DNA of 63,932 nt, filler included, from Octopus bimaculoides (GCF_001194135.2; 8 parts of 8 records of this genome joined end to end with filler, not necessarily neighbours in it), one strand, 5' to 3'. Shown: positions 1,009-7,243, counted from the whole stretch's first letter. Translations and numbers: made by a program. Notes: generated by a model not told the origin, from the letters alone.

Positions 1009-1339
1009 ATGTACCAGTTTCTATCTGCCGGTACAACCATGACCATCGTGTTGCTAGTAAACCTAGCAACAATTCTGACCGTTACCTCAGATCAGAAGTT
1101 TAATGAAGCCCACTACAAACGTTTGCCTCCTGGGTATTCCTATGGTTACCTTCAGACATCTCCAACAGAACAATTCTCCACATCACGAAATCTACTGGCA
1201 TGTACCGCTATCTCCCTGAAGAGTCAATCCGAATTGTTCACTTACAACAAAGTCAGCCATGTTTGTAAGAATTACTCACCGAAAAATATAATGACAGTCG
1301 TCAGCACGAATGACAGCAACGAGATGTCCTACTTCAGAA
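1009..1339 (+). CDS. Coding exon 1 (signal peptide + PAN-like module)
   Basis: Preceded by a long pyrimidine tract and AG acceptors (about 910-1007), so an upstream exon is likely. ATG at 1009, second ATG at 1039 (acaaccATG). Hydrophobic MTIVLLVNLATILTVTS. Donor a|GTAAGT at 1340, phase 1. Confidence 0.8.
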
Positions 1340-4300: not shown

Positions 4301-7243
4301 NNNNNNNNNNNNNNNNNNNNNNNNNNNNNNNNNNNNNNNNNNNNNNNNNNNNNNNNNNNNNNNNNNNNNNNNNNNNNNNNNNNNCGGGTTCTTTCAGTCT
4401 CCGTCTACCAAATCCGCTAACAAGATTTGATTGGCCCTAGGCTGTAGCAGAAGTCACTTGCCCAAAGTTCCGCGCATTGACACTGAACCCGGAACCATGT
4501 GGTTGTGAAGAAAACTTTATACCCCAAAGCCAGGCCTGCGTCAATTCATGAAGATCTGAACATGCACAAAATTTGTGTAAAGTTTGTTGTCAGGGTGGTG
4601 AATGACGAACATCCTGGTAACCAACTACTTGAAAGAGATGGACATCGGAACTGGTCTTAACCCTTCCCTACAGTCCAGACCTAGCTCGCTGTGACTCTTG
4701 GTTGTTCCCAAATCTGAAGGAGACCTCCAGGGGCAGTCGGTTTGAAGATGGAAGCCGTAACAAGAATCCTTGGCACTTTCACTTCGAACGACTTCCATGC
4801 GGCCATCACGAAATGGCTGGAGCGCTACAACATATTTATTTAAGTCAGAGAATTTTACTTTGAAGAAGATTAGAGTTTTGTATTTCGTTGAAATTAATAA
4901 ATGCCTTTCCTGAAAAAGTAATGCACATTGCGGAGATTAAGCAACAAAAAGATCTAAAACCAGCCCTTTTATATTTTTTCTCCCCACAGAAACATCCGCC
5001 GATTCTATGTGTCAGCTTTTCACAACGCATGTCCCGGTGATGCCGGCTGGTTGTGTATTAATGAAAAATTCCATGTATGTACTTGGGAAAGGTCAAGCTA
5101 TTTCCCTTCAATCATATACTCTAATACAAAGGCGAAAACCATATGGCATAACGGTAAGTATTTCGTCGTCTGTCTATTTTATCACCTTGGCTTTCTGTTT
5201 CGAAGTTTTAGTGAGTTAGATTGAGCTGAGTCTATTGTGTATGAAGCGTAGGGAACTACAGCCATTTTGGCGCCGTCTGTTTAGCGTCTCTCATTCGACG
5301 CCGATTTATTTCACATTAGACGCGTCTTAATGTTTATCTCGTTTTAATGCTTCTTCCGTTCATTCAGCCATTTTCTTCTCTATCTGTGTGTCTGTCTGTC
5401 CGTCTCCNNNNNNNNNNNNNNNNNNNNNNNNNNNNNNNNNNNNNNNNNNNNNNNNNNNNNNNNNNNNNNNNNNNNNNNNNNNNNNNNNNNNNNNNNNNNN
5501 NNNNNNNNNNNNNNNNNNNNNNNNNNNNNNNNNNNNNNNNNNNNNNNNNNNNNNNNNNNNNNNNNNNNNNNNNNNNNNNNNNNNNNNNNNNNNNNNNNNN
5601 NNNNNNNNNNNNNNNNNNNNNNNNNNNNNNNNNNNNNNNNNNNNNNNNNNNNNNNNNNNNNNNNNNNNNNNNNNNNNNNNNNNNNNNNNNNNNNNNNNNN
5701 NNNNNNNNNNNNNNNNNNNNNNNNNNNNNNNNNNNNNNNNNNNNNNNNNNNNNNNNNNNNNNNNNNNNNNNNNNNNNNNNNNNNNNNNNNNNNNNNNNNN
5801 NNNNNNNNNNNNNNNNNNNNNNNNNNNNNNNNNNNNNNNNNNNNNNNNNNNNNNNNNNNNNNNNNNNNNNNNNNNNNNNNNNNNNNNNNNNNNNNNNNNN
5901 NNNNNNNNNNNNNNNNNNNNNNNNNNNNNNNNNNNNNNNNNNNNNNNNNNNNNNNNNNNNNNNNNNNNNNNNNNNNNNNNNNNNNNNNNNNNNNNNNNNN
6001 NNNNNNNNNNNNNNNNNNNNNNNNNNNNNNNNNNNNNNNNNNNNNNNNNNNNNNNNNNNNNNNNNNNNNNNNNNNNNNNNNNNNNNNNNNNNNNNNNNTG
6101 TGTGTGTGTGTGTGTGTGTGTGTGTGTTGTGAGGAGTGGGTATGCTTCTGTCTGTATGTGTGTATACGTGTGTTTCATGAGTTTTGCTGTTTTAAAGTGC
6201 CTAGTAGTAGCAGTAGTAGTAGTAATAGTAGTAGCAATAGTAGTAGTAATAGTAGTAGTAATAGTAGTAGTAGTAATAGTAGTAGTAGTAGTAGTAGTAG
6301 TAGTAGTAGTAGTAGTAGTAGTAGTAGTAGTAGCAGCAGTAGTAGTAGTAGTAGTAGTAGTAGTAGTAGTAGTAGTANNNNNNNNNNNNNNNNNNNNNNN
6401 NNNNNNNNNNNNNNNNNNNNNNNNNNNNNNNNNNNNNNNNNNNNNNNNNNNNNNNNNNNNNNNNNNNNNNNNNNNNNNNNNNNNNNNNNNNNNNNNNNNN
6501 NNNNNNNNNNNNNNNNNNNNNNNNNNNNNNNNNNNNNNNNNNNNNNNNNNNNNNNNNNNNNNNNNNNNNNNNNNNNNNNNNNNNNNNNNNNNNNNNNNNN
6601 NNNNNNNNNNNNNNNNNNNNNNNNNNNNNNNNNNNNNNNNNNNNNNNNNNNNNNNNNNNNNNNNNNNNNNNNNNNNNNNNNNNNNNNNNNNNNNNNNNNN
6701 NNNNNNNNNNNNNNNNNNNNNNNNNNNNNNNNNNNNNNNNNNNNNNNNNNNNNNNNNNNNNNNNNNNNNNNNNNNNNNNNNNNNNNNNNNNNNNNNNNNN
6801 NNNNNNNNNNNNNNNNNNNNNNNNNNNNNNNNNNNNNNNNNNNNNNNNNNNNNNNNNNNNNNNNNNNNNNNNNNNNNNNNNNNNNNNNNNNNNNNNNNNN
6901 NNNNNNNNNNNNNNNNNNNNNNNNNNNNNNNNNNNNNNNNNNNNNNNNNNNNNNNNNNNNNNNNNNNNNNNNNNNNNNNNNNNNNNNNNNNNNNNNNNNN
7001 NNNNNNNNNNNNNNNNNNNNNNNNNNNNNNNNNNNNNNNNNNNNNNNNNNNNNNNNNNNNNNNNNNNNNNNNNNNNNNNNNNNNNNNNNNNNNNNNNNNN
7101 NNNNNNNNNNNNNNNNNNNNNNNNNNNNNNNNNNNNNNNNNNNNNNNNNNNNNNTGATAATGATGATGATGATAATGTTGTTACTTTCAGGATATGGAAC
7201 AGCTGATTCCATGGCCATATTCATTCGAATGAAACCGAACTAA
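1009..7243 (+). CDS. Five-exon gene for a predicted secreted protein (signal peptide + degenerate PAN/Apple-like module + uncharacterised Trp/Cys-rich C-terminal domain), 296 aa
   Basis: Exons of 331+179+164+164+53 = 891 nt join in phases 1,0,2,1 with no internal stop. Product: MYQFLSAGTTMTIVLLVNLATILTVTSDQKFNEAHYKRLPPGYSYGYLQTSPTEQFSTSRNLLACTAISLKSQSELFTYNKVSHVCKNYSPKNIMTVVSTNDSNEMSYFRSSEWIKTYAISVGANSLIYNSILNIGSPSTWKVDKCNGAYCPNFFRHPILDIWKSLPIDQVKLVLYKKKTAVVTMVFNGRNTTLENWFSAKNLKSSPWNDLATSPQNSFSMAGAVNIRRFYVSAFHNACPGDAGWLCINEKFHVCTWERSSYFPSIIYSNTKAKTIWHNGYGTADSMAIFIRMKPN*. Domain names are inference. Confidence 0.85.
1348..2030. repeat. (TTA)n array split by the Dong-like insertion (example of dozens of TA, CA, TAA, TAG, GATA, TATG and GAA microsatellites)
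   Basis: Seen directly at 1348-1406 and 1918-2030. Confidence 0.95.
1407..1917 (-). mobile_element. R4/Dong-like non-LTR retrotransposon, 5'-truncated, in intron 1
   Basis: Restriction-like endonuclease domain WYDHKPEG..KILWDFMIQCDH..KPDIVLIEK..IIDIACP..KVERY..IIVGALG..LQKTALLGTARILRKVL. Flanked on both sides by (TAA)n. Confidence 0.85.
2041..2219 (+). CDS. Coding exon 2
   Basis: Acceptor ctatttcAG|. Encodes SEWIKTYAIS...KCNGAYCPNFFRHPILDIWKSLPIDQ. Donor cag|GCATGT (GC type), phase 0. Same length as the paralogous exon at 8739-8917. Confidence 0.88.
2843..3006 (+). CDS. Coding exon 3
   Basis: Acceptor poly-T AG at 2841-2842. Encodes VKLVLYKKK...ENWFSAKNLKSSPWNDL...SMAGA. Donor gt|GTAGGT, phase 2. 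Confidence 0.85.
4385..4530 (-). mobile_element. tRNA-derived SINE, 5' part
   Basis: Matches copies at 24059, 62935 and 63450 (ctttcag..tccgtctaccaaatcc...gaacccggaaccatgtggttg). The other half of the family consensus is probably at about 3520-3600. Confidence 0.7.
4540..4930 (+). mobile_element. Internally deleted mariner transposase relic
   Basis: IHEDLNMHKICVKFV.. followed by a degenerate PYSPDLARCDSWLFPNLK (YSPDLAP-like) motif. Confidence 0.65.
4990..5153 (+). CDS. Coding exon 4
   Basis: Acceptor tttttctccccacAG|. Encodes NIRRFYVSAFHNACPGDAGWLCINEKFHVCTWERSSYFPSIIYSNTKAKTIWHN. Donor g|GTAAGT, phase 1. Confidence 0.88.
7191..7243 (+). CDS. Terminal coding exon 5
   Basis: Acceptor ttactttcAG|. 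Encodes GYGTADSMAIFIRMKPN, stop TAA at 7241-7243. Phase matches exon 4. Confidence 0.8.

Follow-up and report, generated by a model that had tools for sequence, protein, structure and literature searches.

Rebuilding a gene model from the raw sequence of a 63,932-nucleotide (nt) stretch of Octopus bimaculoides DNA (GCF_001194135.2; 8 parts of 8 records of this genome joined end to end with filler, hereafter the window), we characterised LOC128251093, an intact five-exon gene located on the plus strand at positions 1009–7243. Its 296-amino-acid (aa) product combines a signal-peptide-like leader, a PAN/Apple-like module and a C-terminal tryptophan/cysteine (Trp/Cys) domain whose relatives were retrieved from both animals and bacteria. 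The reading that we favour as a whole, and that we consider somewhat probable, is that of an intact gene encoding a secreted extracellular binding or recognition protein equipped with a divergent fibrinogen-related domain.

Once spliced, the five exons form 891 nt, corresponding to 296 codons followed by a TAA stop, and are organised as follows:

1009–1339, plus strand: exon 1, 331 nt, starting from the ATG and ending in phase 1; codes for the signal-peptide-like segment (aa 1–27, nt 1009–1089), then a linker and all of the PAN/Apple-like module (aa ~36–110), with C65, C86 and the N-glycosylation sequons N88 and N101
1340–2040, plus strand: intron 1, GTAAGT...TTTCAG, phase 1
2041–2219, plus strand: exon 2, 179 nt, coding for the beginning of the C-terminal domain, with the W114 strand SEWIKTYAIS and C146-x4-C151-PNFFRHPILDIW
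2220–2842, plus strand: intron 2, GC donor CAG/GCATGT and T14-AG acceptor
2843–3006, plus strand: exon 3, 164 nt, with the beta-hairpin VKLVLYKKKTAVVTMVFNG, the sequon N191 and WFSAKNLKSSPWNDL
3007–4989, plus strand: intron 3, GTAGGT...CCACAG, with microsatellites, an assembly gap (4130–4384) and a mariner-like remnant
4990–5153, plus strand: exon 4, 164 nt, RRFYVSAFHNAC239PGDAGWLC247INEKFHVC255TWE...IIYS...W277
5154–7190, plus strand: intron 4, GTAAGT...TTTCAG, containing both large gaps, with its acceptor 36 nt past the second one
7191–7243, plus strand: exon 5, 53 nt including the TAA stop (7241–7243), coding for the C-terminal strand GYGTADSMAIFIRMKPN

Exon end phases (1/0/2/1) match across all junctions, and the acceptor is an AG preceded by a pyrimidine tract in four of the four introns. 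Intron 1 separates the exon coding for the PAN module from those of the C-terminal domain, and exon 4 carries most of the stretch that is hypervariable among paralogs (aa 212–262). The successive donors read GTAAGT, GCATGT, GTAGGT and GTAAGT, the second of them being a non-canonical GC at 2220. The nearest GT, at 2224, was ruled out as the exon 2 donor: its use shifts the frame into stops, leaving the GC at 2220, a position conserved in the paralogs, as the only in-frame option. Aligned over its full length, the resulting translation shows 100% identity to the RefSeq/NCBI entry ‘uncharacterized protein LOC128251093 [Octopus bimaculoides]’ (P0001), whose annotated span on CM046628.1 (assembly GCA_001194135.2) covers 6235 bp, the same as 1009–7243. 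The gene is thus real as a model, complete, intact and already annotated in RefSeq as an uncharacterised protein. The initial annotation of the window had proposed a complete five-exon gene with a stop-free 296-aa frame, a proposal that the splice phases and sites and the identical RefSeq protein confirm; it had also called this gene hidden, which is correct relative to a track of uninterrupted open reading frames (ORFs) only, LOC128251093 being already annotated. All the motifs that it quoted were recovered (C146-x4-C151-PNFFRHP, W197FSAKNLKSSPWNDL, RRFY..C239PGDAGW..C255TWE and DSMAIFIR), as were both sequons (NDS at 101 and NTT at 191), to which a further one (NYS at 88) is added.

Assembly gaps interrupt two of the introns, at 4130–4384 within intron 3 and at 5408–6098 and 6378–7154 within intron 4. 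Two relatives were compared with the gene across these gaps: P0002, the closest paralog on the same chromosome (79% identical, ~0.5 Mb away), and P0003, the closest relative from O. sinensis (76% identical), whose locus contains no N at all. Each of them comprises five exons of 331, 179, 164, 164 and 53 nt, the same sizes as in LOC128251093, with the same splice-site sequences at all junctions other than the intron 2 donor, and the three proteins align without indels. In the gap-free paralog locus L003, no additional exon was found in the equivalent of intron 4. From the identical exon sizes, including those of a gap-free locus, and the indel-free alignments, we therefore ruled out an exon hidden in the gaps; no coding sequence is missing, and the reading frame is continuous across them at the messenger RNA level.

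The N-terminus displays signal-peptide-like features, in line with the hydrophobic stretch initially reported. The leader (aa 1–27) has a hydrophobic core at aa 11–26, with a valine at −3 and a serine at −1 before D28, and aa 1–33 are unstructured in the AlphaFold model, with a predicted local distance difference test score (pLDDT) below 50. Hydropathy revealed no transmembrane-like segment other than aa 11–26, and the protein is probably secreted. Further downstream, aa ~36–110 superposes in Foldseek searches on plasminogen PAp (4dur), HGF NK1 (5coe) and 3hms, with root mean square deviations (rmsd) of 2.4–2.8 Å over 79–85 columns, a probability of 1.0 and a template modelling (TM) score, TMt, of 0.65 on the 91-residue HGF N domain 3hms; the region is modelled with a pLDDT of 63–83. 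This predicted structure, a helix packed on an antiparallel sheet, is that of a PAN/Apple fold, and the N-terminal PAN module proposed in the initial annotation is thereby borne out (2.4 Å over ~80 residues) with a sequence match that stays below threshold. The Pfam model PAN_3 was matched at E = 0.039 over aa 45–105, with 14.2 bits against a gathering cut-off of 21.1, and only 2 of the 16 paralogs scanned reach an E-value of 0.005 for PAN. Several paralogs are nonetheless named ‘Apple domain-containing protein’ in UniProt. Compared with the known PAN/Apple modules (plasminogen PAp, HGF N domain, leech antiplatelet protein; PAN_1, PAN_3 and PAN_4), the octopus module thus shares the fold and a weak PAN_3/PAN_1 sequence signal under the Pfam gathering score, but differs by its cysteines. 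C65 and C86, invariant in the family, are the only ones, allowing one possible disulfide, whereas canonical PAN/Apple modules contain more than one pair.

The remainder of the protein (aa 111–296) forms a 185-aa globular Trp/Cys domain encoded by exons 2–5, in which the pairs C146/C151 and C239/C255 are conserved. A profile built from 16 octopod proteins only and searched against 1.84 billion cluster representatives retrieved 1118 of them at E ≤ 1e-3 and 655 at E ≤ 1e-10. The near-invariant pattern of this family (W114, W163, F187, W197, D210, R228, C239, G244-W245 and C255) is entirely kept in LOC128251093. Hosts include echinoderms, hemichordates, amphioxus and corals (the crinoids Anneissia and Antedon, Acanthaster, Ptychodera, Branchiostoma, Pocillopora) and numerous molluscs (Mytilus, Mizuhopecten, Ylistrum, Dreissena, Potamilus, Pomacea, Elysia, Aplysia, Bulinus, Gigantopelta), the examples being all ‘uncharacterized’ or misnamed after neighbouring domains. 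Bacterial carriers are large surface-type proteins, such as a Myxococcota protein with TIG repeats, or others with FG-GAP repeats or a PEP-CTERM tag. Among the bacterial carriers P0086, P0098, P0107, P0088 and P0223, a canonical fibrinogen A subdomain precedes the domain in the first four; one bacterial carrier has a fibrinogen-like N-terminal segment to which the collagen COLFI model matches as well. The distribution of the domain is thus cross-kingdom. It often occurs in 2–4 tandem copies per protein, and its partners (ZP, VWD/TIL/C8, EGF, fn3, TSP1, C-type lectin, F5/8C, SUEL lectin, WSC and PAN) are all extracellular, many of them carbohydrate-binding. The association of PAN with this domain in proteins of ~290 aa recurs in gastropods and bivalves, in agreement with the initial mention of similar motifs in unnamed mollusc proteins.

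No Pfam family was found for the C-terminal domain when scanning the full protein, the 16 paralogs and 40 diverse domain sequences, so that the absence of a nameable family pointed out in the initial annotation extends to all 40 diverse members. DUF7922, matched by a stretch of one amphioxus protein, was discarded as it did not recur among these 40 sequences. Foldseek comparison with viral structures returned nothing, and no sign of a viral or transposon protein was observed. Literature searches on the LOC identifiers or on ‘Apple domain’ with octopus returned no publication, and broader keywords nothing that could be connected to the family. The coral skeletal protein USOMP5, considered as a possible further member, was not retained for want of confirmation.

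Modelled alone with the 40-sequence diverse alignment, the C-terminal domain reached a pLDDT of 90.5 and a predicted TM score of 0.87. Searched against the PDB with Foldseek, this model returned almost exclusively fibrinogen-related domains (FReDs) among its top ~45 matches, all of them weak, namely ANGPTL6, fibrinogen beta and gamma, L-, M- and H-ficolin, FGL1, MFAP4, angiopoietin-2 and ANGPTL3, together with the Xenopus intelectin XEEL. The link with fibrinogen rests on bacterial and coral homologs in which a Pfam-significant fibrinogen N-terminal segment is fused in register with the family domain. The octopod-only profile reaches the Myxococcota protein P0086 at E = 4e-35, and a P0086 unit in turn reaches FIBCD1 at 2.4e-7. 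These bacterial units and those of Pocillopora open with ‘SC..I...G.S.G.GvY.IDP.....p..VyCDMTtDGGGWTmv.K’, which scores 31.4 bits (Myxococcota) and 23.8 bits (coral) against Pfam Fibrinogen_C, for a cut-off of 22, at profile positions 5–52, and which also matches FIBCD1, angiopoietin-2, XEEL and fibrinogen beta in the PDB. A profile of 9 such bridge units matched XEEL at 7e-10 (N-terminal 56 residues), tachylectin-5A at 4.5e-9 and also FIBCD1, and their hhalign comparison with fibrinogen domains gave a probability of 97.6% over 50 columns. The fibrinogen segment of the bridges continues unbroken into the family domain, with the W of GGGWT in register with octopus W114. The octopus protein itself does not contain the A subdomain motif C...CDM..GGGWT, its PAN module ending at ~aa 110 and its domain beginning with SEW114IKTY. 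We infer, with moderate support, that the domain lost the A subdomain while keeping the first core strand (W114 corresponding to the W of GGGWT) and the C-x(n)-GW...C disulfide loop. In our assessment, the C-terminal domain is probably a far-diverged branch of the fibrinogen-related superfamily, in which most animal members, this one included, would have lost the A subdomain; the alternative is a separate fold onto which fibrinogen N-termini were fused.

The homolog searches yielded ~60 entries from the octopods O. bimaculoides, O. sinensis, O. vulgaris and Argonauta hians, many of them fragments; the second of these searches, with a diverse profile, returned octopod entries only, plus one bacterial PEP-CTERM protein, and no informative names. 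At least 11 O. bimaculoides paralog clusters, that of LOC128251093 included, lie on the 18.6-Mb chromosome-scale scaffold CM046628.1, and at least 16 O. sinensis clusters on a single 15.1-Mb scaffold. The tandem expansion of the family in octopods is real. The initial annotation had suggested a lineage-expanded uncharacterised family: the family is indeed uncharacterised and tandemly arranged in octopods, but its C-terminal domain is not restricted to this lineage, and only the expansion of the PAN-fused form is octopod-specific. Among 16 full-length octopod proteins, aa 111–211 are the most conserved (mean column entropy 0.88), PNFFRHPIL being almost invariant, and aa 212–262 around the C239–C255 loop the most variable (entropy 1.9). 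Nei-Gojobori ratios of nonsynonymous to synonymous substitution rates (dN/dS) against P0002 and P0003 are 0.47 overall, 0.47–0.53 in the PAN part and 0.39–0.41 in the C-terminal domain; these values indicate a moderate purifying selection, unlike that of a dead copy, and a ratio of ~0.47 is within the range often reported for fast-evolving secreted families. In addition, intron-less contigs of 1.27–1.29 kb from runs SRR30931884 and SRR24189498 encode related full-length proteins, suggesting that relatives of LOC128251093 are transcribed and spliced somewhere.

Within this framework, the leader would be cleaved, probably between VTS and DQ, releasing a ~30-kDa N-glycosylated two-module protein, soluble outside the cell, whose task would be binding or recognition. 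In the C-terminal domain, the conserved half (aa 111–211) would serve as a scaffold and the hypervariable aa 212–262 around the C239–C255 loop as the ligand-contacting surface, with PAN as a second binding or oligomerisation module. A role in glycan or microbe recognition may be proposed because of the company of partner domains in which the family occurs and by analogy with fibrinogen and intelectin lectins.

Several observations weigh against this interpretation, beginning with those on the fold. All the structural matches of the C-terminal domain are weak (best E-value 0.038, probability ≤ 0.80, TM 0.36–0.44, rmsd 7–9 Å), none of them reaching E < 1e-3 or a TM of 0.5 in the PDB, and XEEL (4wmo) is matched with a TMq of 0.28 and a probability of 0.10 only. 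Fibrinogen_C (PF00147) gave no match at E ≤ 10 with the full protein or at E ≤ 0.1 with the isolated domain. Sequence searches of the PDB with the protein (phmmer) and with the 40-sequence profile returned no match either, the latter giving 0 at E ≤ 10. Aligning 126 metazoan members or the octopod set with fibrinogen domains in hhalign gave probabilities below 1%, against a shallow FReD profile of limited sensitivity (4 sequences verified as full-length PF00147 matches). The bridge proteins have no detectable similarity to fibrinogen past about residue 50–70, and no fibrinogen-type acidic Ca2+-site motif was seen on inspection of the octopus sequence. The C-terminal domain is thus not a PF00147 member by any defining test; the fibrinogen-C/intelectin-like fold put forward in the initial annotation, reasonable as a remote kinship, is only partly backed by the structural matches and the bridge homologs and was over-read as a fold assignment, in an interpretation that was otherwise largely on target. 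An independent fold unrelated to fibrinogen, in which the bridges are fusions and the structural likeness is convergent or spurious, would account for the end of similarity in the bridge units, the null alignment of the family body and the low TM scores. We nevertheless regard it as the less likely explanation, since the GGGWT strand belongs to the very core of the fibrinogen B subdomain and is in register with the near-invariant first Trp of the family, and since the PDB search offered no competing fold, the next non-fibrinogen matches being much worse (TM 0.16–0.30). A forced global alignment is also colinear, placing the C..D.GW loop opposite C...GGWW and the terminal strand opposite MKIRP, with negligible confidence. 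Intelectins set a precedent here, the N-terminal fibrinogen segment being all that sequence comparison still detects in them.

The other points against a functional recognition protein concern the gene and its product. The leader has no basic n-region, and C247 (‘GWLCINEK’, nt 5056–5058, exon 4) is an odd seventh cysteine, also present in P0002 and replaced by Ser in P0003, which could be unpaired and allow covalent dimerisation, or be neutral. No family member with a name or a published function was found in database records or in the literature, and the exact protein is known from a single contig, that of the genome itself. The weakest point of the gene model is the GC donor of intron 2, at which splicing could be inefficient: because both paralogs have a GT at this site (GTATGC in P0002, GTATGT in P0003), the GC is a derived T-to-C change. 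LOC128251093 might then be a decaying or poorly expressed paralog whose splicing is impaired by this change and whose intact frame reflects a recent duplication, a scenario to which the truncation of the neighbouring paralog LOC106876989 (described below), the many fragments among family entries and the single genomic source of the protein all lend some weight. We consider it improbable, as GC-AG introns are a functional minority class, the rest of the donor site is near consensus, the 891 nt contain neither stop nor frameshift, dN/dS values are not close to 1, all family-invariant residues are kept and RefSeq arrived at the same gene model. With an intact gene preferred, the main functional rival is a role in mucus or matrix, LOC128251093 being secreted as a structural constituent of mucus, egg coat, cuticle, sucker lining or another extracellular matrix instead of a recognition lectin. 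The presence of the same domain in ZP, mucin-like VWD/TIL/C8, EGF, fn3 and TSP1 architectures is consistent with such a role, and so is the frequent use of PAN/Apple modules in mucus and matrix. However, this small two-domain protein is free of repeats and of low-complexity regions, its C-terminal domain also occurs beside C-type lectin, SUEL, F5/8C and WSC carbohydrate-binding modules, and recognition repertoires are where tandem expansion combined with a hypervariable segment is more typically met. Neither side of the argument is decisive; the structural role appears rather unlikely to us, if clearly less so than gene decay.

Known systems help to locate the preferred reading of a secreted recognition protein. 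FReD lectins (ficolins, tachylectin-5A, FIBCD1, angiopoietins; PF00147) are the only fold family returned by the structure search of the C-terminal domain; through the bridge homologs they share its first core strand, and a Cys...GW...Cys loop and a hydrophobic strand at the C-terminus are common to the two, the octopus protein being likewise predicted to be secreted. By contrast, the latter is devoid of the A subdomain, of a Pfam match, of a profile-profile signal, of a TM of 0.5 and of a visible acidic Ca2+-site motif, and its N-terminal partner is PAN instead of collagen, a coiled-coil or IgSF. Intelectins (X-type lectins such as XEEL and human intelectin-1) follow the same logic of a fibrinogen-like N-terminal segment and a strongly diverged body, XEEL being the best PDB sequence match of the bridge profile, but the octopus protein has no sequence match to them in the PDB and superposes poorly on XEEL. 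Closer to octopods, the PAN-containing mollusc proteins (Aplysia LOC101846043, a Dreissena ‘Apple domain-containing protein’, and those of Mytilus, Mizuhopecten, Ylistrum and Gigantopelta) contain the domain, often within the same architecture, and the Pocillopora proteins, arranged as PAN, EGF, FReD N-terminal segment and domain, keep the fibrinogen A subdomain and ‘DGGGWT’ lost in the octopus form; all of them are uncharacterised. The FREPs of the snail Biomphalaria are likewise molluscan, secreted two-module proteins of expanded families; in the octopus family, predicted to be secreted, the variation clusters within a single part of the sequence. FREPs, however, combine a canonical PF00147 domain with IgSF, and the octopus protein has neither (no Ig or Fibrinogen_C Pfam match); we know of no somatic diversification or immune induction in the octopus family, unlike in snail FREPs. 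A more far-reaching proposal, which we advance tentatively and consider doubtful as a whole, is that the C-terminal domain defines an unnamed, Pfam-less fibrinogen/intelectin branch (more than 1000 clusters in metazoans and bacteria) that shed the A subdomain in most animals, and that octopods turned its PAN-fused form, by tandem expansion, into a germline-encoded recognition repertoire with a diversified ligand-binding surface at aa 212–262, a cephalopod counterpart of FREPs.

Downstream of the gene, the window contains a second, convergent member of the family:

8646–8918, minus strand: paralog LOC106876989 (P0044, 201 aa), with its exon 2 at 8918–8757

In the annotated protein, translation continues past the conserved GT donor at 8756 into intronic sequence and ends at a stop near 8646; exons 3–5 were not found in 7244–8756, a stretch that includes a 100-N gap (7944–8043). 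LOC106876989 is a truncated pseudogene, or else an artefact of the assembly or of the annotation. An inverted repeat (I1, 1986–2229 and 8729–8972, 77%) relates the two loci.

Repeats are frequent in and around the introns. Intron 1 contains (ATT)n tracts and a minus-strand 114-aa ORF remnant of an interspersed repeat (1485–1829), other copies of which lie at 473–640 and 9682–9849 (168 nt, 86% identity). The repeat ORFs at 1485–1829 (minus strand) and ~9225–9380 (plus strand) have tails of the form ‘..VVPIIVGALG..LQKTALLGTARILRKVL’, which presumably resemble the C-terminus of invertebrate retroelement ORFs. In intron 3, a degenerate plus-strand ORF (~4560–4860, ‘YSPDLA..D.WLFP.LK ... KWLERY’) is broken by stops and presumably resembles the C-terminus of mariner/Tc1 transposases. 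Pfam scans of these intronic transposon-like ORFs and of the other repeat ORF gave no match. Each gap of this piece, except the 10-N gap at 247–256 and the N runs at the edges, adjoins a microsatellite on at least one side (4110–4129, 6099–6127, 6200–6377, 7155–7180, 7905–7943 and 8925–8972), of the types (TA)n, (TG)n, (AGT)n, (GAT)n, (CA)n and (AAC/AAT)n. These gaps are probably unresolved simple repeats, and their stated sizes are therefore unreliable. Right beside the 10-N gap, an 80-nt direct duplicate, 100% identical (167–246 and 257–336), looks like an assembly joining artefact and not biology.

LOC128251093 had been annotated beforehand, and it contains no categorically new feature. The useful outcome lies in its placement, within a tandem family of octopods and within a larger cross-phylum family without a Pfam model, tied to the fibrinogen and intelectin lectins via bacterial and coral intermediates. 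This Pfam-less domain family, its probable derivation from FReDs and the octopod expansion of its PAN-fused form, with a localised hypervariable segment, are the features worth noting. Should the link with fibrinogen-related lectins fail, LOC128251093 would be merely another annotated ‘uncharacterized protein’. Should it hold, the domain would deserve a curated family model, and octopods would provide a concrete candidate family of recognition proteins for work in cephalopod immunology and glycobiology; the hypervariable loop region around C239–C255 would be the obvious surface to test.

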